A DNA stretch of 64,000 nt from Anaeramoeba ignava BMAN. Taxonomy: Eukaryota > Protista > Anaeramoebae. The DNA is taken from positions 124,001-188,000 of the forward strand of contig JAPDFW010000055.1 in NCBI GenBank assembly GCA_028826165.1. The letters are read 5' to 3'. Each line of letters begins with the position of its first letter. The stretch's first letter is position 1. This document shows, piece after piece, positions 2,944 through 25,814 of the stretch. The position numbers and the translations under genes were made by a program. The notes under the pieces were generated by a model that was not told where the DNA came from, ran no database searches, and saw only the letters and a program-made list of their open reading frames with translations.

Positions 2944-5900
2944 TTAGTCAATAAAAGTACTGCAAATATTTTTAACTTCATGTCTTATTGTTGCAATATT
3001 TGTTGTTAATTTTGTAAAACGAGGATCATTTCCAAACATAACTTTAATTAATTCTAAAGATCTTGAATAATAAAACATTAATTGAGCAATAACTAATCGA
3101 AGAGCAGCTGATCCATTATTATAATTGCTAAATCCTGTTAAGATTTCTTCATTAATGCTTTTGATAGCGTCTCTCCAATTGTTGGAAAAATTTTGGAGAA
3201 GTTTTTCAATAATTTCTGCTTTAACTAACGGTTCTTTCAATTTTTTTAATGATTTATGAATATTTTGTGATATTGAAAGAGATGGATTTTTTTCATTTTT
3301 TTGGTTTTCTTGAATTTTTTGAATTTGTCTATTTTCTTTAATTTCTTTATTTTCTTTATTTTCTTTAATTTCTTTAATTTCTTGATTTGTTTCAATTTTT
3401 TCATTTGTTTCAATTTTTTCAATTTTTTGATTTTTTTCATTTTTTTGATTTTTTTGATTTTTGTTTCGATGGCTTCTTTTCTTCCTTTTATTTCCCTTCT
3501 TTTCCTTCTCCATATTTTCTGCAATTGCAAATTCAGTTGTTTTTACAAACCTAATCAATTCATCAAAATAATCTCTCAAAATTTCTTCTGAATAAATTGT
3601 TCTTTGTTCTTCTAATAAAATGGTAAATCTTTCTGATTCTTCAGAAACAATTTGGTTCTGTTCCAAAACATTCATGATCAAATCATAATTGTTGATTAAA
3701 AATAAGGCTTGGACTTTCAAGGAATCAAAACTTAAAGCGAATTTGTTTAAAAAATTCTCAATTTCCAAGCGCAAAGTATTAAGAGGCGCAATAATATTTT
3801 CAGATTTGAAAAACTTGTTTAATTTTAAAAGAGAAGTTGTGAATTCAATGTATTTTCTTGTGAGAAAATGCGGAGGAGTTCCGCCAGTGGCTAACTTCAA
3901 ATCCGCTGTTTTTTTTGATTTTTTTGAACTTGTATTCTTTTGGGGAAAAGCAGAATTTTTTCTTGATAATTTTGACATTTCAAAATCAATATTTGTAGAA
4001 AGAGTAGAAGATAAATTTTGAACACTAAGAATATGGTCATCAAAAATAGCACGGAATCGTTGCCAAAGAATAGATTCCAAATTTTGGAAATATTGCTCAA
4101 GAATCGTGTTTTTTTTCTCTTGCATAATTGCACGACTTCTTTGAATAAGTTGAATCATAATAAATATTCCAATTGCATCATAATTAGTGTTAAAATATCG
4201 AGTGAATTCTTCCTGCAAAAATAAAATAGAGTTTGAAAGCACATTTACAGAGATGTGTGCGCTGTTGAAAAATTGGATGCTAAACATCAATTCATTATCA
4301 GCCATTTCTGCTAAAGAGCAATTAATGCTGCTGAAGATGTCCTCGTAGTTGTGTTTGATTTTTTTTTGGATCGAATCCTTAATGTTTATTGTTTGCGGCT
4401 TTTGTTTTAAAATTTCAGCCCGCACTCCAAGCGTAAATACATTAGTGTACATCTTCGAACTCTTTACATTTTTTGAGACGTTTTTCTTTCCAAGAAGATC
4501 ATTGCTTGTTGCCGATTGTTTGATGATCTTTTTGGACGATCTTGTGTAGGATTTGAAATATTCTTGGTAATTTTTGCCAATTATTTCCGTGTATAAATTG
4601 CAAAGTTCTTCGTAGATTTGCTTGGAATAAGCCTTGATAAACCGCGCGAATTCTGAATACTTTGAAATTAGTTCTTGTTTAAGTGAATCATGATTTTGTT
4701 GCGGTTTTTTAAAGAGTTGGAATTTTCTTTCCAAAAAAATTTTCAATCTTTCTGATGATTTTTGGCAAACTTCCCTTAATTTAGGGATACTTTCATTTAT
4801 AGAAACCACATTTGTTTGGGAATGGTGTGTTTCTTGTGTTTGATTATTGTTGTTATCCTGTTGCATTTCAATTGGTTTTGGAGTGAGAGTATTTTCATTT
4901 TTTTGGTTGAAATTTTTTTGGTAAAAAAGAAAGTTCATTTTATTATCCAAAATCTTCAAAAGCTGAATATAATTTTGGTCGATTTCATCATAAAGAATTT
5001 TGGAGATTAAATTTTCTGAAATTTCTACATTTTGGATAAAGTTTGTTAATTTTGCTTCTATTTTTCTTCTGTTGACTAATTGCACATTCATTGACATGCT
5101 TTCTTCTTGAAGTGTTTTAATTTCTGATGAAATGGATCCTAAATTGATTTGAAATCCGTTGAGCATGATTTCCATTTTTGAAAGAATTGAATCGCATTCT
5201 TTGATTTCTTGAAATAATTTTGCTGTGTTATCTGCTTGGTTCATGTAATCATCTATTGATTGTATTTCTATTTCGCGAAGTTCGTTTTCCATTTGTTTTG
5301 AGTATTTTCTGAGGTCTACTCCTTTTTCCAATGCGTTTTTAACTAGTGGTTCTTGTTGGAATTTAGTGATATCGTCTTTTATTTTCAAAATGAATTTTCA
5401 AAATGAAATAAATTTTAATTTTAAAATGAATTTTCAAAATGAATTTTAATTTTAATTTGAATTTGAATTTGAATTCTAATTTTAATTTTTTAATTTAAAT
5501 TTCAATTTTAATTTCAATTTTAATTTCTAATTTTAATTCTAATTTTAATTTTAATTTTAATTTTAATTTTAATTTTAATTTTAATTTTAATTTTAATTTT
5601 AATTTTAATTTTAAAATGAATTTTCAAAATGAATTTTAATTTTAATTTTAATTTTAATTTTAATTTTAATTTTAATTTTAATTTTTTTAAATTTTAATTT
5701 TAATTTTAATTTTAATTTTAATTTTAATTTTAATTTTAATTTTAATTTTAATTTTAATTTTAATTTTAATTTTAATTTTAATTTTAATTTTAATTTTAAT
5801 TTTAATTTTAATTTTTAATTTTAATATTAATTTTAATATTAATTTTAATTTTAAATTTTAATTTTAATTTTAATTTTAATTTTAATTTTAATTTTAATTT

Positions 5901-17686: not shown

Positions 17687-17806
17687 GGATTCGGCCATAT
17701 CCAATCAAATACTCCAGGACACATTCCGAACCCTGAAGATAAATGATTGAGAGCTAAGTGAGTTAGTTGGATGGGGAACCGCCAGCGAAAACTTAGTGTT
17801 GAATCC
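17687..17806 (+). rRNA. 5S rRNA, copy 1
   Basis: 120 nt; helix I GGATTCGGC/GTTGAATCC, GGCCATA, CCGAAC..GAAGATAA, GGATGGGGAACCGCC (box C-like), then an oligo-T Pol III terminator. Confidence 0.93.
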
Positions 17807-17950
17807 TTTTTTTTTTTTGATTTATTTTTTTATTCCACTTTTTTATTTTTATTTTATTCCACTTTTATTTTTATTTTTTATTCCACTTTTTTATTTTTAT
17901 TTTTATTTATTTTTTATTTTATTTTTATTTGATTTATCTTCTTTTTAAAA

Positions 17951-18472: not shown

Positions 18473-21200
18473 TTAAAGATCTAAATCAGTATGAAGTTCT
18501 TTTTCTTTAATAATTTGTTTAATAATTTGATGTTTTCTTTTTTTCTTTTTGAATAAAATAATTCCAATAATTATCATTAAAATAACAATAATTGGAATAA
18601 TTATTCCAATAGTTATTGTTGTTGTTTTTGTTGAATTATCAGTTTTTTGACATGGTTCACATGGTTCATAAGGAGATAATGTTGTAATTGATGTTGTTGA
18701 ATTAATTCCTGAATATTCATTATTTGAACAATTTAAATCAGATGATGAATAAACTGAAATTTCATAATATTCTTCTCCTTGTAATCCTGAAGTAATTGAA
18801 TAATGAGGAATGAAATTTGTTAAACAAATTGATGTTGAATTATAAGTAAATGAATATCCTTTTAATCCATTTGATAAAATTAATGAGTTCCAAGTACAAA
18901 CAAATCCATTAATTAATGATATGCAATTTAATGAAGTAATATTTCCTAATTTAGCTTTTGTTGAAATAATTGAACTAGGTAATCCTAAATATGGTGTTTC
19001 ACAATTTAAATCAATACATCCTCGAATTGAAATATTATATTCAACATTTCCTGATATTCCACTTATTATTCCAATTATTTCATTTCCACTTAAATCAAGA
19101 GATGTGAATTTTTGCCAATTTGTTTCATTATCAAGTGAAATTGAATAATTTTTTGCATTTGTTAATTTTGTGAAATTAAATTCAATTTCTTCAATTTTGG
19201 AAATTGTTTCATAAATTATTGGAGATGTTAAATTATCAGTTTTAATTGAAATTGATGAAATATATCCACATTTATCATTTGAATTACATGATGATATATT
19301 GATTTGATATTCTTGATTTGGGAATTGAGCTGTAAATTGTTGATTTGATGAAGTTGGTTGATAATTTCCTGAATCATTTTGATAAATTGATTGATAAGTA
19401 AAATTATAATAAAATGGAATTGAACAATTAATTGGTTGATTCCAAGTGCAATTAATATCAACTAAATTTGAAATTGAACATGAAATATTTGTAATTTCTC
19501 CAAATATTAATGAAATTGATGATTCAACAATTTCTCCTTTATCATCTACTTCACATTCTTGTGTTCTACATCCACAAATTGAAATATTATAATAATTTTC
19601 ACATTCAAAATTATTCCAAAGATAATCAAGTGAAGAATTATCAACTGAAATGAAAGATATTAAATCAGGTTGAGATTGAATGAGATAAGAAAGATTATAA
19701 TGATTAAGATGAGCAATTCCTTCATTGATCTGTACATTTGGATAATTCCAAGTAACATTAATTGAATAATTTGAAGGATTTGATAAATGAAAATCTTTTA
19801 CAGAATCAATTTTTGTTGTTAAATTAATGAAAGAAGAAGATTCACCACATTTCATTGATTCTAAATCACAAGATTTGATTTGAATTGAATAATATTCATT
19901 TCCAGTAATATTATCATAAAATGAAGAATTGAATAATTGATAATAAACATTTTCATCTTCAAGAATTGGAGAATCAATATCAATCCAATCATATCCATAA
20001 TTAATTTGATATTTCAAAGTTCTGAAAAATTCAATTTTATCCCAATAACAATCAAATGATGAAAATAAAGATGAACAATTAAGAATATTAACTTGAGGAA
20101 TTAAATTAGCTTCATAAACAAATGCTTGATTTGCATTTGGAGCTCCAATAGCAGTAAAATTCTCATAAATTGAAACAGAAAATCCAAAATTTGAAGCTGA
20201 TTTACTCAAAATTTGTTCTTGATTCCAATTTGTTCCATTATATCTGTAAATAAATACTTGATTTGCACCATAAGTTCCAATAACAATAACATCTTCATAA
20301 ATTGAAACACTCCGTCCAAAATTTGAAACTGAAGGTTCATTCAAAATTTGTTCTTGATTAAAATTTGTTCCATTATATCTGTAAATAAATACTTGTTTTG
20401 CACCATAAGCTCCAATAACAATAACATCTTCATAAATTGAAACTCAAAATTTGTTCTTGAATCCAAATTGCTCCATTATATCTGTAAATAAATGCTTGTT
20501 TTGAACCATAAGCACCAATAACAATAACATCTTCATAAATTGAAACAGAATATCCAAAATATGAAGCTGATTCAATCAAAATTTGTTCTTGATTCCAATT
20601 TGCTCCATTATATCTGTAAATAAATACTTGTTTTGCATTATTAGTACCAATAACAATAACATCTTCATAAATTGAAACAGGAAATCCAAAATTTGAAACT
20701 GATTCACTCAAAATTTGTTCTTGAATACAAATTGCTCCATTATATCTGTAAATAAATGCTTGATTTACACCAGGAGCACCAATAACAATAACATCTTCAT
20801 AAATTGAAACAGAATATCCAAAATATGTAGCTGATTCAATCAAAATTTGTTCAAGATCAAAATTTGTTCCATTATATCTGTAAATAAATGCTTGTTTTGC
20901 ATAAGGAGATCCAATAACAAGAACATCTTCATAAATTGAAACACTAACTCCAAAATATGAAGCTGCTGGACCTGAAAATTGATCTAATAAATTCCAAATC
21001 CAAGCTTCATTTGGAGTAGAATAATATCTTGTTGTTTCTGTTAATAATCTTGTTGTTTCTAATTCTTGAATTATTGATGATGGAATTATTGATGATGAAA
21101 TTGATTTTTGGTTATTTTGATTTGATTGAATTAAGAAAATATTGATAATTAAGAAAAAGGAAAAGGAAAAGGAAAAGAAAAGGAATTGATTTGATTTCAT
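18473..21200 (-). CDS. Type I membrane protein: signal peptide, 7 FG-GAP-like blades (integrin-alpha-like propeller), ~4-5 FN3-like domains, TM, short basic tail; copy A, frameshifting deletion at ~20440
   Basis: 44-45 aa repeats FG.SVSIYED....GAP; FN3 patterns (INVTW..P..HYNLSY; Y.ISI); TM ITIGIIIPIIVILMIIIGIILF followed by KKKKRK. Confidence 0.85.
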
Positions 21201-21238
21201 TTTTGTTTTGTTTTGTTTTTTTTGGATTGTTTTTTTTG

Positions 21239-21431
21239 CTATTTTTTATTTAATTAAGAAAAATAAATAATAAATAAAATAAGTTTATTTTATGTTTTTA
21301 TTTTTTTTTTTTTTTGTTTATTTTATGTTTATTTTATGTTTTTTATTTTGTTTATTTTATGTTTATTTTATGTTTTTGTTTTTTTGTGTTTTTTTTTTTT
21401 TATTAAAAAAATTATTTTTGCTTTTTCTTAC
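21239..21431 (-). other. Predicted 5'-UTR intron of FG-GAP gene copy A (copy B: 25211-25395)
   Basis: GTAAGA donor and AATAG acceptor conserved in both copies; a TTTTCATT initiator-like motif lies ~30 nt upstream of the donor. Confidence 0.55.
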
Positions 21432-21668
21432 TTTTTGTTGAGAGAAAGAAAAAGAAAGAAAAATGAAAAAGAAAAAAAATGAATTACTTTTTTTATTTGT
21501 AATTAAATATTTATTTAAATTAATTAATAAAAATAAATAAAATAAATAAAGAATTAAAAAAATAATTTAAATTGGATTAAATTAAATTAGATCTTATTTA
21601 TTTAAAAATAATTAAAATAAAATAAAAAGAAAAAAGAATAAATAAAGAATTAAAAATTAAATTAAATT

Positions 21669-21788
21669 GGATTCGGCCATATCCAATCAAATACTCCAGG
21701 ACACATTCCGAACCCTGAAGATAAATGATTGAGAGCTAAGTGAGTTAGTTGGATGGGGAACCGCCAGCGAAAACTTAGTGTTGAATCC
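21669..21788 (+). rRNA. 5S rRNA, copy 2
   Basis: Same sequence as copy 1, followed by oligo-T. Confidence 0.93.
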
Positions 21789-21886
21789 TTTTTTTTTTGA
21801 TTTATTTTTTTATTCCACTTTTTTATTTTTTATTTTTTTATTCCACTTTTTTCTTTTTATTTTTATTTAATTTATCTTCTTTTTAA

Positions 21887-22227
21887 AGATAAAAACATTC
21901 CTCAATATAATTTACTTCTCATTATTAATATTAATTTAGGAAATTTATATTGTTTTTTCTTTTCTTTAAATTATAAAATCTTTTTTATTTTCATTTTCAT
22001 TTTCATTTTCATTTTTTTATTTAAATTTATAATTTATTTAATTTCAAAATATAATTTTGGATTTATTATTCTGTTTGAATAAATCATTTCAAATATTTGA
22101 TTTTGAATTTGATTTAATCAATATTTTAATATTAATTTATTATGAAATTTAATTATTTCTTTATTTTCTTGTTTTAAATGAAATATTATTACAAAATTCT
22201 TTTTATTTTAAAATAATTTAATCAAAT
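21887..22227 (-). pseudogene. Decayed RCC1-BTB (BTB-half) fragment, second copy
   Basis: GATAAAAACATTCCTCAATATAATTTACTTCTCATTATTAATATTAATTTAGGAAATTTATATTG nearly matches the sequence from 38254 on. Confidence 0.87.
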
Positions 22228-22415
22228 TAAATCAAATAAAAAAAGGAGAATTGAATTGAATTAAGAATTGAATTGAATTGAATTGAATTGAATCAAAATG
22301 AATTGAAAATGTTATTTTTTTATTATTTTTTTTTTGTTTTTGAATTTTTGGAAAAAGAAAAGAAAAGAAAAGAAAAGAGAAATTGGAATTTGGAAATGAA
22401 ATTGGGAAATTGGAA

Positions 22416-25172
22416 TTAAAGATCTAAATCAGTATGAAGTTCTTTTTCTTTAATAATTTGTTTAACAATTTGATGTTTTCTTTTTTTCTTTTTGAATAAA
22501 ATAATTCCAATAATGATTATTGAAATAACAATAATTGGAATAATTATTCCAATAGTTATTGTTGTTGTTTTTGTTGAATTATCAGTTTTTTGACATGGTT
22601 CACATGGTTCATAAGGAGATAATGTTGTAATTGATGTTGTTGAATTAATTCCTGAATATTCATTAAATGAACAATTTAAATCAGATGATTGAATAAACTG
22701 AAATTTCATAATATTCTTCTCCTTTTAATCCTGAAGTAATTGAATAATAAGGTGCTAGTAAATTTGTTAAACAAACTGATGTCGAATTATAAGTAAATGA
22801 ATATCCTTTTAATCCATTTGATAAAATTAATGGATTCCAAGTACAAACAAATCCATTAATTAATGAATTACAATTTAATGAAGAAATATTTCCTAATTTA
22901 GCTTTTGTTGAAATAATTGAACTAGGTAATCCTAAATATGGTGTTTCACAATTTAAATCAATACATCCTCGAATTGAAATATTATATTCAACATTTCCTG
23001 ATATTCCACTTATTATTCCAATTATTTCATTTTCACTTAAATCAAGAGATGTGAATTTTTGCCAATTTGTTTTATTATCAAGTGAAATTGAATAATTTTT
23101 TGCATTTATTAATTTTGTGAAATTAAATTCAATTTCTTCAATTTTGGAAATTGTTTCATAAATTATTGGAGATGATAAATTATCAGTTTTAATTGAAATT
23201 GATGAAATATATCCACATTTATCATTTGAATTACATGATGATATATTGATTTGATATTCTTGATTTGGGAATTGAGCTGTAAATTGTTGATTTGATGAAG
23301 TTGGTTGATAATTTCCTGAATCATTTTGATAAATTGATTGATAAGTAAAATTATAATAAAATGGAATTGAACAATTAATTGATTGATTCCAAGTGCAATT
23401 AATATCAACTAAATTTGAAATTGAACATGAAATATTTGTAATTTCTCCAAATATTAATGAAATTGATGATTCAACAATTTCTCCTTTATCATCTACTTCA
23501 CATTCTTGTGTTCTACATCCACAAATTGAAATATTATAATCATTTTCACATTCAAAATTATTCCAAAGATAATAAAGTGAAGAATTATCAACTGAAATGA
23601 AAGATATTAAATCAGGTTGAGATTGATTAAGATAAGAAAGATTATAATGATTAAGATGAGCAATTCCTTCATTGATCTGTACATTTGGATAATTCCAAGT
23701 AACATTAATTGAATAATTTGAAGGATTTGATAATTGAAAATCTTTTACAGAATCAATTTTTGTTGTTAAATTAATAAAAGAAGAAGATTCACCACATTTC
23801 ATTGTTGCATTATCACAAGTTCTGATTTGAATTGAATAATATTCATTTCCAGTAATATTATCATAAAATGAAGAATTAAATAATTGATAATAAACATTCT
23901 CATCTTCAAGAATTGAAGAATCAATATCAATCCAATCATATCCATAATTAATTTGATATTTCAAAGTTGAAGGAAATTCAATTTTATTCCAATAACAATC
24001 AAATGATGAAAATAAAGATGAACAATTAAGAATATTAACTTGAGGAATTAAATTAGCTTCATAAACAAATGCTTGATTTGCAAGAGGAGCTCCAATAGCA
24101 GTAAAATTCTCATAAATTGAAACAGAAAATCCAAAATATGAATATGAAAGTCCATTCAAATTTTGTTCTTTATTCCAATTTGTTCCATTATATCTGTAAA
24201 TAAATACTTGATTTGCATAATAAGCACCAATAACAATAACATCTTCATAAATTGAAACAGAAAATCCAAAATATGTAGCTGATTCACTCAAAATTTGTTC
24301 TTGATTCCAATTTGTTCCATTATATCTGTAAATAAATGCTTGATTTGCAAAATTAGTTCCAATAACAATAACATCTTCATAAATTGAAACAGAATATCCA
24401 AAATATGAAGCTGAAGGTTCACTCAAAATTTGTTCTTGAATCCAATTTGTTCCATTATATCTGTAAATAAATGCTTGTTTTGCACCATAAGCACCAATAA
24501 CAATAACATCTTCATAAATTGAAACAGAATATCCAAAATATGAAGCTGATTCACTCAAAATTTGTTCTTGATTCCAATTTGTTCCATTATATCTGTAAAT
24601 AAATGCTTGTTTTGCATTATTAGCACCAATAACAATAACATCTTCATAAACTGAAACACTAACTCCAAAAAATGTGAAGCTGAAGGTTCACTCAAAATTT
24701 GTTCTTTATTACAATCAGTTCCATTATATCTGTAAATAAATGCTTGATTTGCACCATAAGTTCCAATAACAATAACATCTTCATAAATTGAAACAGAATA
24801 TCCAAAATATGAAACTGATTCAATCAAAATTTGTTCTTGATTCCAATTTGTTCCATTATATCTGTAAATAAATGCTTGTTTTGCAGTATAAGTTCCAATA
24901 ACAATAACATCTTCATAAATTGAAACACTCCATCCAAACCATCCTGAACCTGAAAATTGATCTAATAAATTCCAAATCCAAGCTTCATCTGGAGTAGAAT
25001 AATATCTTGTTGTTTCTGTTAATAATCTTGTTGTTTCTATTTCTTGAATTATTGATGATGGAATTATTGATGATGAAATTGATTTTTGATTATTTTGATT
25101 TGATTGAATTAAGAAAATATTGATAATTAAGAAAAAGAAAAAGGAAAAGAAAAAGAATTGATTTGATTTCAT
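22416..25172 (-). CDS. FG-GAP propeller/FN3/TM surface protein, copy B; frameshifts at ~24670 (homopolymer) and ~22690 (+1 nt)
   Basis: Paralog of 18473-21200 with near-identical signal peptide, FN3 stalk and tail, and 7 blades. Confidence 0.85.
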
Positions 25173-25624: not shown

Positions 25625-25744
25625 GGATTCGGCCATATCCAATCAAATACTCCAGGACACATTCCGAACCCTGAAGATAAATGATTGAGAGCTAAGTGAG
25701 TTAGTTGGATGGGGAACCGCCAGCGAAAACTTAGTGTTGAATCC
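25625..25744 (+). rRNA. 5S rRNA, copy 3
   Basis: Same sequence as copies 1 and 2, followed by oligo-T. Confidence 0.93.
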
Positions 25745-25814
25745 TTTTTTTTTTTGATTTATTTTTTTATTCCACTTTTTTCTTATTTTTATTCCACTTT
25801 TATTTTTTTTTTTT

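Follow-up and report, generated by a model that had tools for sequence, protein, structure and literature searches.

Layout of the two genes and their frame breaks

Do two tandem genes of Anaeramoeba ignava BMAN, which are nearly identical except in short loops of a β-propeller, belong to a family of diversifying recognition or adhesion receptors, as an initial annotation of the locus had proposed? The genes, A and B, lie on the minus strand of a 64,000-nucleotide window (the whole stretch that was analysed: contig JAPDFW010000055.1, positions 124,001–188,000 of the forward strand, assembly GCA_028826165.1). In each, a signal peptide precedes seven FG-GAP_2 blades, and five FN3-like domains then lead to a membrane span and a short tail. 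Positions below are those of the window.

18473–21200, minus: gene A, receptor copy, frame-broken, two ORFs
20430–21200, minus: A ORF 1, signal peptide and blades 1–4
18473–20344, minus: A ORF 2, blades 5–7, stalk, membrane span, and tail; its frame opens just after a TGA, at about 20440
21123–21200, minus: A predicted signal peptide, a hydrophobic N-terminus of ~26 residues, read from the sequence without a predictor
20093–20966, minus: A propeller, seven FG-GAP_2 blades; FG motifs start at 20954, 20822, 20690, 20558, 20320, and 20188, that of blade 5 being deleted
20430–20446, minus: A break, 29 nt missing relative to a normal blade junction (gap at about 20445)
18650–20092, minus: A stalk, five FN3-like β-sandwich domains, 24 N-x-S/T sequons, 21 Cys
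18473–18610, minus: A membrane span (18551–18610) and tail, including the stop codon
22416–25172, minus: gene B, receptor copy, two frame breaks, three ORFs (24555–25172, 22681–24558, 22416–22709)
about 25101–25172, minus: B predicted signal peptide, read in the same way
24040–24950, minus: B propeller, seven FG-GAP_2 blades; FG motifs start at 24938, 24806, about 24667 (at the break), 24537, 24402, 24270, and 24135
24667–24672, minus: B break 1, a T6 run immediately preceding the blade-3 FG, with different reading frames upstream and downstream
22688–22692 (about 22690), minus: B break 2, a single base more than in A, within the last stalk domain
21669–21789, plus: 5S rRNA gene between A and B
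17687–17807 and 25625–25745: two further 5S rRNA genes

The 5S rRNA genes are the setting of the ~3.97-kb tandem unit. The blades of 44–45 residues, seven per gene, that the initial annotation described are borne out by the sequence and by Pfam, in which FG-GAP_2 (PF14312) matches the four ORF pieces of A and B with 82.8, 35.2, 87.2, and 45.9 bits (gathering cut-off 23 bits). An AF2 model of the propeller of L003, the closest intact paralog (91% identical to B), is confident (pLDDT 89, pTM 0.85) and predicts 28 strands, i.e. seven blades of four, with the N-terminal strand closing blade 7. The stalk model (pLDDT 90.5) predicts five FN3-like sandwiches whose best structural matches are fibronectin FN3 7–10, gp130, and OSMR; Pfam gives weak matches for EpoR_lig-bind and fn3. 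After the membrane span of A come a basic stretch and then a short tail, which has a conserved acidic motif at its end.

Both copies are frame-broken, which the initial annotation had missed. In A, the missing 29 nt correspond to the 4-1 loop and the beginning of strand 1 in blade 5; without them the end of blade 4 is fused straight onto strand 1 of blade 5 and the frame shifts into a TGA (20430–20432). Break 2 of B moves the membrane span and tail into another frame. The breaks mark either pseudogenes or assembly errors, and A and B as assembled are probably decaying family members; error in assembly or polishing is a realistic source of the B breaks, at somewhat below an even chance, and a less likely one of the deletion in A.

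Loop variation, selection, and blade exchange

The family to which A and B belong has at least 70 loci of the full-length type in the A. ignava genome and 87 annotated proteins. An open frame of at least 813 residues is kept at 58 of the 70 loci, and about 12 have short open frames. A and B are probably the two youngest members of this germline family of type I membrane proteins. Protein searches returned 100%-identical entries under the name Anaeramoeba ignava. Searches with the whole protein and with the stalk returned, outside A. ignava, only prokaryotic FG-GAP_2 propellers at 22–35% identity, and in them the family was absent from the sister species A. flamelloides; on the evidence of these sequence searches the family is restricted to one species. 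In the prokaryotic proteins (P0082–P0101), the sole sequence relatives outside A. ignava, the match covers the propeller only, which is joined to other partner domains (dockerin, cadherin-like, Por secretion tail) without an FN3 stalk of the A. ignava type or the eukaryotic layout of signal, membrane span, and tail. The propeller head may have been acquired by lateral transfer. As candidates for transfer, the Anaeramoeba genome paper lists three FG-GAP proteins of A. ignava but none of A. flamelloides; it sought host-symbiont recognition factors only among such candidates, and the propeller family is not described there.

Variation is concentrated at three spots per blade, namely three residues before FG, one after FG, and three to four (up to seven) after IG, as the initial annotation had noticed between A and B and as holds in 30 other, intact paralogs, a set apart from the genes that defined the spots. 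In these 30, every blade has its entropy peaks at the three spots, and the stalk hardly varies. When A is compared with B, the loop codons diverge at 26.4% of bases (34 changes are replacement and 3 silent), the remainder of the propeller at 5.1%, and the stalk at 3.0% (32 replacement, 10 silent); the signal/N-terminal part (2.3%) and the membrane span with tail (2.4%) are likewise nearly identical, also in agreement with the earlier reading. At loop codon positions 1 and 2 the variability is 0.1–0.57 (mostly 0.3–0.57); at position 3 it is 0.04–0.13 (0.38 at the post-FG codon), with a column-specific base kept. The proposed Tyr/Asn/Gly/Trp bias needs amending to Tyr/Ser/Ala/Gly (Ala 20%, Tyr 15%, Ser 13%, Gly 8%): Asn (5.6%) and Trp (2.3%) are infrequent overall, Trp being the second commonest residue at the post-FG position.

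In the fold model the variable spots correspond to the 4-1 loops, the 2-3 loops, and the first residue of strand 1, and would share one face of the propeller rather than being scattered, a face assigned from strand topology and not from model coordinates. The chain is predicted to leave the propeller after strand 3 of blade 7, on the opposite face, where the 3-4 loop is also moderately variable (pN 0.13).

Maximum-likelihood estimates for the 30 paralogs (GY94+F3X4, fixed FastTree topology) give ω = 2.86 for the loop spots, significantly above 1 (lnL −3635.7 versus −3653.0 at ω = 1; LRT 34.5), with the caveat that the loop partition is saturated (tree length 48) and the family recombines; for the scaffold ω is 0.62, and for the stalk 0.26. 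In 15 independent nearest pairs the loop spots carry 753 replacement and 51 silent changes (pN 0.46, pS 0.105, binomial p = 6 × 10^−37), and the stalk has pN 0.043 and pS 0.060. By element, pN/pS is 5.1 for the 4-1 loop, 4.9 for the 2-3 loop, 0.37 for the 1-2 turn, and 0.48 for strand 3; such NG86 ratios are inflated in this genome of 80% A+T, as seen in the stalk (0.71 by counting versus 0.26 by ML). Selection for amino-acid change probably acts on the outward face of the propeller, the scaffold and stalk remaining near constant.

The initial annotation suggested that loop variants are mixed and matched by gene conversion. Variants do recur across blade positions (34 pre-FG variants are present at least twice, and 24 of these are found at more than one position), but the loop combination is unique in 172 of 180 blades, so that the recurring variants are the commonest short motifs and may recur by chance. 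The data point instead to exchange at the level of blades, since blades 2–6 lack positional identity, blade number ranges from 2 to 8 across the family (counts of 2, 4, 6, and 8 were seen), and whole blades are swapped. Near-identical blades are found at different positions; L034 and L035 differ by a swap of blades 3 and 4; and in 52 of 90 cases the best-matching blade in the nearest-stalk partner sits at another position. Scaffold base distances are 0.110 for different blades of one gene, 0.118 for the same position in different genes, and 0.133 for different positions in different genes. The propeller scaffold exceeds the stalk 1.57-fold in silent divergence (p = 4.5 × 10^−6), and the history of the propeller is uncoupled from that of the stalk. 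A PHI-type test found incompatibility without distance dependence in the propeller (p = 0.30) and only a modest signal in the stalk (p = 0.013); given the null result in the propeller, conversion tracts fall short of formal proof.

Could the loops simply drift under relaxed constraint, with a scaffold that is conserved and homogenised by concerted evolution, and with neither selection nor a recognition repertoire? Propeller loops tolerate change, ω is made uncertain by saturation, recombination, and A+T bias, and the ratio of replacement to silent changes in the A/B stalk is near neutral. However, drift predicts ω of about 1, not 2.86 (2ΔlnL = 34.5), and it fits poorly with loop codons whose third positions are almost fixed and column-specific while the first and second vary by 30–57%. 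Silent divergence in the loops resembles that of the scaffold (0.092), yet their replacement divergence is several-fold higher, and gene conversion would wipe out neutral loop differences along with those of the scaffold; we regard drift alone as improbable. The initial annotation had itself raised polishing artefacts, by which copy differences or mosaic blades would reflect collapsed or cross-polished paralogs. The assembly was made with ABruijn from R9 nanopore reads and polished with Racon, Nanopolish, and two rounds of Pilon (PMC11550330), and short-read polishing of a multicopy family by Pilon could falsely homogenise scaffolds and stalks. The B breaks are 1–2-base indels, one of them in the T6 run, and the roughly 12 loci with short open frames fit the same cause. 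Errors would not strike codon positions 1 and 2 of the same 8–11 codons in each of seven blades, most loci keep long open frames despite their loop differences, and long reads span entire genes. Since 30 intact genes, spread over many contigs, show the same pattern, polishing artefacts cannot explain the loop variation; such error is plausible for the frame breaks only, and as an account of the family's diversity it is very unlikely.

The same molecules might not be receptors for bacteria but serve another role, either in self/non-self or mating-type recognition, like Dictyostelium TgrB1/C1, or as a variable surface coat that evades viruses, predators, or toxins docking on it. All of these roles are compatible with diversifying selection on an exposed face, and a rapid arms race or a recognition code peculiar to the species would agree with the absence of the family from A. 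flamelloides. About 80 paralogs would be unusual for allorecognition, which as a rule depends on a small number of highly polymorphic loci, and no partner-ligand gene pair was seen beside A and B, whose neighbours are 5S genes and unrelated ORFs only; these roles seem to us unlikely, though less so than drift. Programmed or somatic diversification, by diversity-generating-retroelement mutagenesis or by cassette assembly as in lamprey VLRs, is resembled at first sight by loop-restricted variation on a constant scaffold, and is the least credible of the alternatives. Every variant is a complete germline gene with its own promoter-side signal peptide, and an incomplete germline gene flanked by cassettes was not seen within the window. 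Variability is not adenine-specific (G 0.34, C 0.27, T 0.27, A 0.32), and we reject a retroelement target on the grounds of this equality over the four consensus bases and of the ordinary germline genes.

Comparison with known propeller and recognition systems

The description of the proteins as integrin-alpha-like holds at the level of fold and Pfam clan. Integrin alpha likewise has a seven-bladed FG-GAP-type head, a β-sandwich leg, a single membrane span, and a short tail, and Foldseek aligns the model with it at TM-scores of 0.65–0.71 and 15–18% identity, WD40 propellers matching equally well. The integrin ligand face, as Springer reportedly described in 1997, is likewise formed by the 4-1 and 2-3 loops. 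In contrast, the A. ignava propeller belongs to PF14312 and that of integrin alpha to PF01839; the Ca-binding DxDxDGxxD hairpins, which integrins carry in the 1-2 loops of their last three or four blades, are lacking, the 1-2 connections being two-residue turns in all blades; thigh and calf legs (Integrin_alpha2, PF08441) give no Pfam match in A or B, where the leg consists of the five FN3-like domains; and GFFKR after the membrane span is replaced by a Lys/Arg run. On the lack of Ca-binding loops, thigh/calf legs, and GFFKR we reject identity with integrins. Integrin beta (PF00362) has no match in the A. ignava genome, a result that the all-prokaryotic control genomes could equally give. The stalk model matches the FN3 strings of fibronectin and of tall cytokine receptors (gp130, LIFR, OSMR); with these the stalk shares only 10–15% identity, it has no WSXWS motif, the tail lacks a kinase-binding box, and the putative ligand-binding head is the propeller.

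The closest analogue in mechanism is the HNWD/NWD family of Podospora anserina (het-d, het-e, het-r) (Paoletti et al., 2007, PMC1805685; Chevanne et al., 2010, PMC2873952; Dyrka et al., 2014, PMC4986451). In both, near-identical DNA repeats are exchanged within and between members, repeat number varies, and positive diversifying selection acts on a small number of positions in each repeat, which lie on the propeller's interaction face. The A. ignava genes show the similar repeats across positions and genes that mark concerted evolution of this type, and their elevated ω falls on few positions per repeat, in the 4-1 and 2-3 loops. The HNWD family has about 10 members, all cytosolic and of the NOD-like receptor type (NACHT plus WD40), to which RIP adds mutations, whereas the A. 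ignava family uses the FG-GAP_2 repeat in a type I membrane protein on an FN3 stalk, with ~80 members in a metamonad-related amoeba; the two have no sequence relationship. The Pfam search of A and B returned no NACHT match, and with a signal peptide, FN3 stalk, and membrane span the family works like HNWD without belonging to it. Exposed positions of repeat or Ig-like ectodomains also diversify under selection, sometimes with conversion-like exchange, in TgrB1/TgrC1, lamprey VLRs, and the LRRs of plant hypervariable NLRs, which differ from the A. ignava family in being an IPT/TIG-fold polymorphic ligand-receptor pair, somatically assembled LRR proteins, and cytosolic LRR proteins, respectively.

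A putative repertoire of surface receptors

Taken as a whole, the observations are probably best explained by a fast-evolving family of propeller surface receptors found in A. ignava only. Its architecture, fold, site of variation, ω above 1, blade exchange, and restriction to one species we count as demonstrated. The five-domain stalk would hold the propeller away from the membrane, leaving it on the face with the conserved 1-2 and 3-4 loops, and each of the seven blades would contribute its 4-1 and 2-3 loops and the first residue of its strand 1 to the outward face. The repertoire would be made and kept by tandem duplication with gene loss, and by blade-sized exchange within and between genes through unequal crossing-over or gene conversion, which would erase positional identity, alter blade number, and uncouple the history of the propeller from that of the stalk. 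The proteins may thus form a panel of surface receptors or adhesins with differing binding specificities, most plausibly for bacterial surfaces, either of prey or of the Desulfobacter symbiont, and the short conserved tail may couple them to uptake or sorting. The diversifying receptor first proposed gains from the family-level ω and the clustering on one face; the window copies are frame-broken and maybe dead, and the prey, symbiont, or self role is inferred.

Anaeramoeba is a model for an anaerobic eukaryote that captures bacteria and keeps them in a symbiosome open to the outside, and the ~80 species-specific surface proteins with a fast-evolving outward face are concrete candidates for prey or symbiont recognition. 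With the fungal WD40 NLRs as the first, they would be the second independent example of a β-propeller that is diversified as a binding platform by repeat exchange and positive selection; here the platform lies at the cell surface and is made from a different repeat family. It is conceivable, though improbable, that blade-sized conversion among the ~500 genomic blades continually makes new heads within clonal lineages, and that any one cell perhaps expresses only a subset of the genes. A free-living protist would then possess an "anticipatory" receptor repertoire for bacteria, and the repertoire of A. ignava could decide which bacteria are eaten and which, like the Desulfobacter symbiont, are kept in the symbiosome.

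Layout and divergence of genes A and B

Genes A and B lie in tandem in the A. ignava genome (42.8 Mb, roughly 20% G+C), where the window is C56:124001-188000, and alternate with 5S rRNA genes on the opposite strand, in a unit of one receptor copy plus one 5S gene of ~3.97 kb. Public protein records that match paralogs elsewhere in the genome at 100% identity carry the name Anaeramoeba ignava, which rejects the dictyostelid origin suggested by the G+C content.

Features of the receptor/5S rRNA array (window positions)
17687-17807, plus, 5S rRNA gene
18473-21200, minus, gene A
18476-18505, minus, conserved tail end of A
21669-21789, plus, 5S rRNA gene
22416-25172, minus, gene B
22419-22448, minus, conserved tail end of B
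25625-25745, plus, 5S rRNA gene

An A+T-rich spacer, which includes window positions 21490-21568, separates gene A from the 5S gene. 5S genes also stand beside the closest paralogs on contig C87 (L003:18-138 and 4158-4278) and at one further family locus (L019:259-379), and no adjoining 5S gene was found in 17 other family loci scanned.

As read from their sequences, A and B each start with a hydrophobic N-terminal signal and a short linker, followed by seven repeats of 44-45 residues, which match the Pfam blade repeat FG-GAP_2 (PF14312) well over the cut-off, a stalk of ~480 residues in which Cys and N-glycosylation sequons are abundant, a single membrane span, and a tail of ~40 residues with a Lys/Arg run at its start and a conserved acidic motif at its end. 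In most paralogs an acidic, Leu/Ile-containing motif is conserved in the last ~10 tail residues and the mid-tail is variable; the motif is a possible signal for sorting or for binding an adaptor.

The two copies differ most at three places in each blade (the loop spots): before the FG motif, at the residue after FG, and after the IG motif. Base divergence between A and B is 26.4% in the loop-spot codons (34 replacement and 3 silent differences), 5.1% in the remaining propeller (36 and 4), 3.0% in the stalk (32 and 10), 2.3% in the signal and N-terminal part (4 and 1), and 2.4% in the membrane span and tail (3 and 1). The blade count, near-identical cores and three variable spots described in the initial annotation are real in both copies, but it overlooked that neither has a single open frame as assembled. 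In A, 29 nt are absent at ~20445, so that blade 4 runs from its end directly into strand 1 of blade 5, after which a TGA follows; B carries a frame shift within a T6 run (24667-24672) and a second at ~22690, caused by one extra base. Since the contigs come from early nanopore sequencing and assembly with Pilon polishing (PMC11550330), the 1-2-base indels of B may be assembly errors, an origin that is less likely for the 29-nt deletion of A. A and B are the youngest pair of the family, and both are broken as assembled.

Position of the loop spots and selection on them

The propeller was modelled on L003, the closest intact paralog (91% identical to B), using a 43-row alignment. The model (pLDDT 89, pTM 0.85) has 28 strands arranged as seven four-stranded blades, and Foldseek matched it about equally to integrin alpha and WD40 propellers (TM 0.65-0.71). 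Strand 1 of each blade runs from the residue after FG and is followed by a two-residue 1-2 turn, strand 2 closing with IG, a four-residue 2-3 loop, strand 3, the 3-4 loop (NGxx), strand 4, and a 4-1 loop closing with FG. When the sequence is placed on the model strands, the loop spots before FG, after FG and after IG correspond to the 4-1 loop, the residue that opens strand 1, and the 2-3 loop, respectively. Because propeller blade topology is antiparallel, all three are predicted to share one face of the propeller. Once past strand 3 of blade 7, the chain exits on the other face, which would direct the variable face away from the stalk, the faces being assigned here by strand topology. The stalk model of A (window 18650-20092; pLDDT 90.5) comprises five beta-sandwiches, with fibronectin FN3 7-10 and the ectodomains of gp130, OSMR and LIFR as best matches. 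The integrin label originally attached to these genes can be set aside, as the three defining integrin features tested are all absent. A search of the genome for an integrin beta subunit (PF00362), with prokaryotic genomes as its only controls, gave no match.

Selection was analyzed in 30 intact seven-blade paralogs, none of which had served to define the loop spots; the 30 were taken from 48 gene models, and 19 further paralog loci are outside the codon analyses. In every blade, amino-acid entropy is maximal at the three loop spots, and the stalk is nearly invariant. Maximum-likelihood estimation (GY94+F3X4 on fixed FastTree topologies) gave omega 2.86 for the loop spots (49 codons; lnL −3635.7 versus −3653.0 at omega = 1; 2dlnL = 34.5), 0.62 for the propeller minus loop spots (246 codons; 2dlnL = 36.6 against omega = 1), and 0.26 for the stalk (464 codons). 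Counting inflates omega in this genome (stalk 0.71 counted versus 0.26 by maximum likelihood), and the likelihood figures are therefore preferred. Among 15 independent nearest pairs, the loop spots carry 753 replacement and 51 silent differences (pN 0.46, pS 0.105), compared with pN 0.043 and pS 0.060 in the stalk. By structural element, pN/pS is 5.1 for the 4-1 loop, 4.9 for the 2-3 loop, 2.2 for the post-FG residue, 0.37 for the 1-2 turn, 0.88 for strand 2, 0.48 for strand 3 and 0.96 for strand 4; strand 1 scores high because the codon for its Ser at register +3 alternates between TCN and AGY. Moderate variability (pN 0.13) is also seen in the 3-4 loop, which lies on the opposite face.

The codons themselves provide an argument that is independent of any model. 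Variability at loop codon positions 1 and 2 is 0.1-0.57 (mostly 0.3-0.57), whereas at position 3 it is only 0.04-0.13 (0.38 in the post-FG codon), with a column-specific third base, A at −2 and +18 and T elsewhere. With the first two positions variable and the third nearly fixed, the loop codons have undergone many amino-acid replacements with little silent change. Adenine-directed (DGR-like) mutagenesis is ruled out as their source, since variability is equal for all four consensus bases. At the level of the family, the original proposal of a diversifying receptor withstands the refuting checks named with it: the variable sites fall, by topology, on one face and are not scattered, and their omega exceeds 1.

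Exchange of blades

Blades 2-6 share one common consensus, and only blade 1 stands apart in the scaffold comparison. Scaffold base distances are 0.110 among the blades within a gene, 0.118 at one blade position across genes, and 0.133 in all other comparisons, and whole blades at different positions can be only 3-6 of 123 bases apart (e.g. L040 blades 2 and 6). Gene pairs with 1% stalk difference show no diagonal of matching blades in their propellers; in 52 of 90 cases a blade has its best match at a different position of the partner gene. In the tandem neighbors L034 and L035 (G000:C35:324900-333500), whose stalks are 0.9% apart, blades 3 and 4 are swapped in order: off-diagonal comparisons differ at 6 and 8 bases, on-diagonal ones at 13. 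Silent divergence in the propeller scaffold is 1.57 times that in the stalk (p 4.5e-6). Together with the differing blade counts of some members, listed below, these observations show that the history of the propeller is not that of the stalk and that segments the size of a blade are moved.

Open family members with other blade counts
L002, G000:C87:4249-8973, 8 blades, 961 residues
L010, G000:C109:129232-134091, 4 blades, 770 residues
L048, G000:C38:8800-13500, 2 blades, 695 residues

Two or four blades alone cannot close a normal seven-blade propeller, and L010 and L048 are thus deletion products or assembly collapses.

Exchange at the level of single loops, or from a small reshuffled set of cassettes, is a different matter. 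The initial annotation proposed mix-and-match of loop variants by gene conversion, but the loop combination is unique in 172 of 180 blades, which leaves that proposal unsupported, and nothing points to a small pool of cassettes. Mutual information among the three loop spots is slightly over that of shuffles (z 2.9-8.7). A PHI-type test for recombination gave a weak positive signal in the stalk (p 0.013); for the propeller, where 49% of site pairs are incompatible, it gave p 0.30 and did not confirm tracts.

The Ser at register +3 (after FG-x) is conserved in all family members; its codon is TCN in some blades and AGY in others (e.g. window 24660-24650 versus 24530-24520). A TCN/AGY switch takes two base changes, and the split distinguishes two ancient lineages of blades, today found side by side.

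The family and its proposed role

A six-frame search identified 70 full-length-type family loci in the A. ignava genome, 58 of them with open frames of at least 813 residues, and many in tandem clusters (contigs C75, C68, C77, C87, C49, C38, C15 and C121). Public protein sets contain 87 members, every one of them from A. ignava; searches with the whole protein and with the stalk by itself gave no match in those of A. flamelloides, for which annotated genomes are available from the same project, or of any other eukaryote. Outside A. ignava only prokaryotic FG-GAP_2 propellers match, at 22-35% identity. The family is not described in the genome paper, which names just three FG-GAP proteins, as lateral-transfer candidates. 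Several members are long, at 1205-1303 residues (L026, L030 and L037 on contigs C116 and C45; annotated proteins P0002, P0003, P0018 and P0022), presumably through extra stalk domains. The annotated protein P0049 (1424 residues) has additional BTB and RCC1 Pfam matches and may be a gene model merged with a neighboring RCC1-BTB gene.

By mechanism, the closest known system is found in Podospora anserina, in the HNWD family of WD40 proteins, where propeller repeats evolve in concert and diversifying selection acts on four interaction-face positions of each repeat (PMC1805685; PMC2873952; PMC4986451). The A. ignava family differs from it in repeat type, in being membrane proteins, in family size and in host lineage.

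The initial interpretation is partly supported overall. We propose that A and B form part of a germline-encoded set of type I surface proteins, in which a glycosylated stalk of five FN3 domains would present the propeller, each of the seven blades contributing its 4-1 loop, its 2-3 loop and one pore-lining residue to the outward face. Selection would drive the outward faces of paralogs apart, and tandem duplication, gene loss and blade exchange would supply and reshuffle the variants. Roles in allorecognition or as an escape coat are possible. The family is more readily viewed as receptors or adhesins of differing specificity, for which bacterial surfaces are the most plausible targets, since the host is a bacterivorous amoeba that houses a Desulfobacter symbiont.
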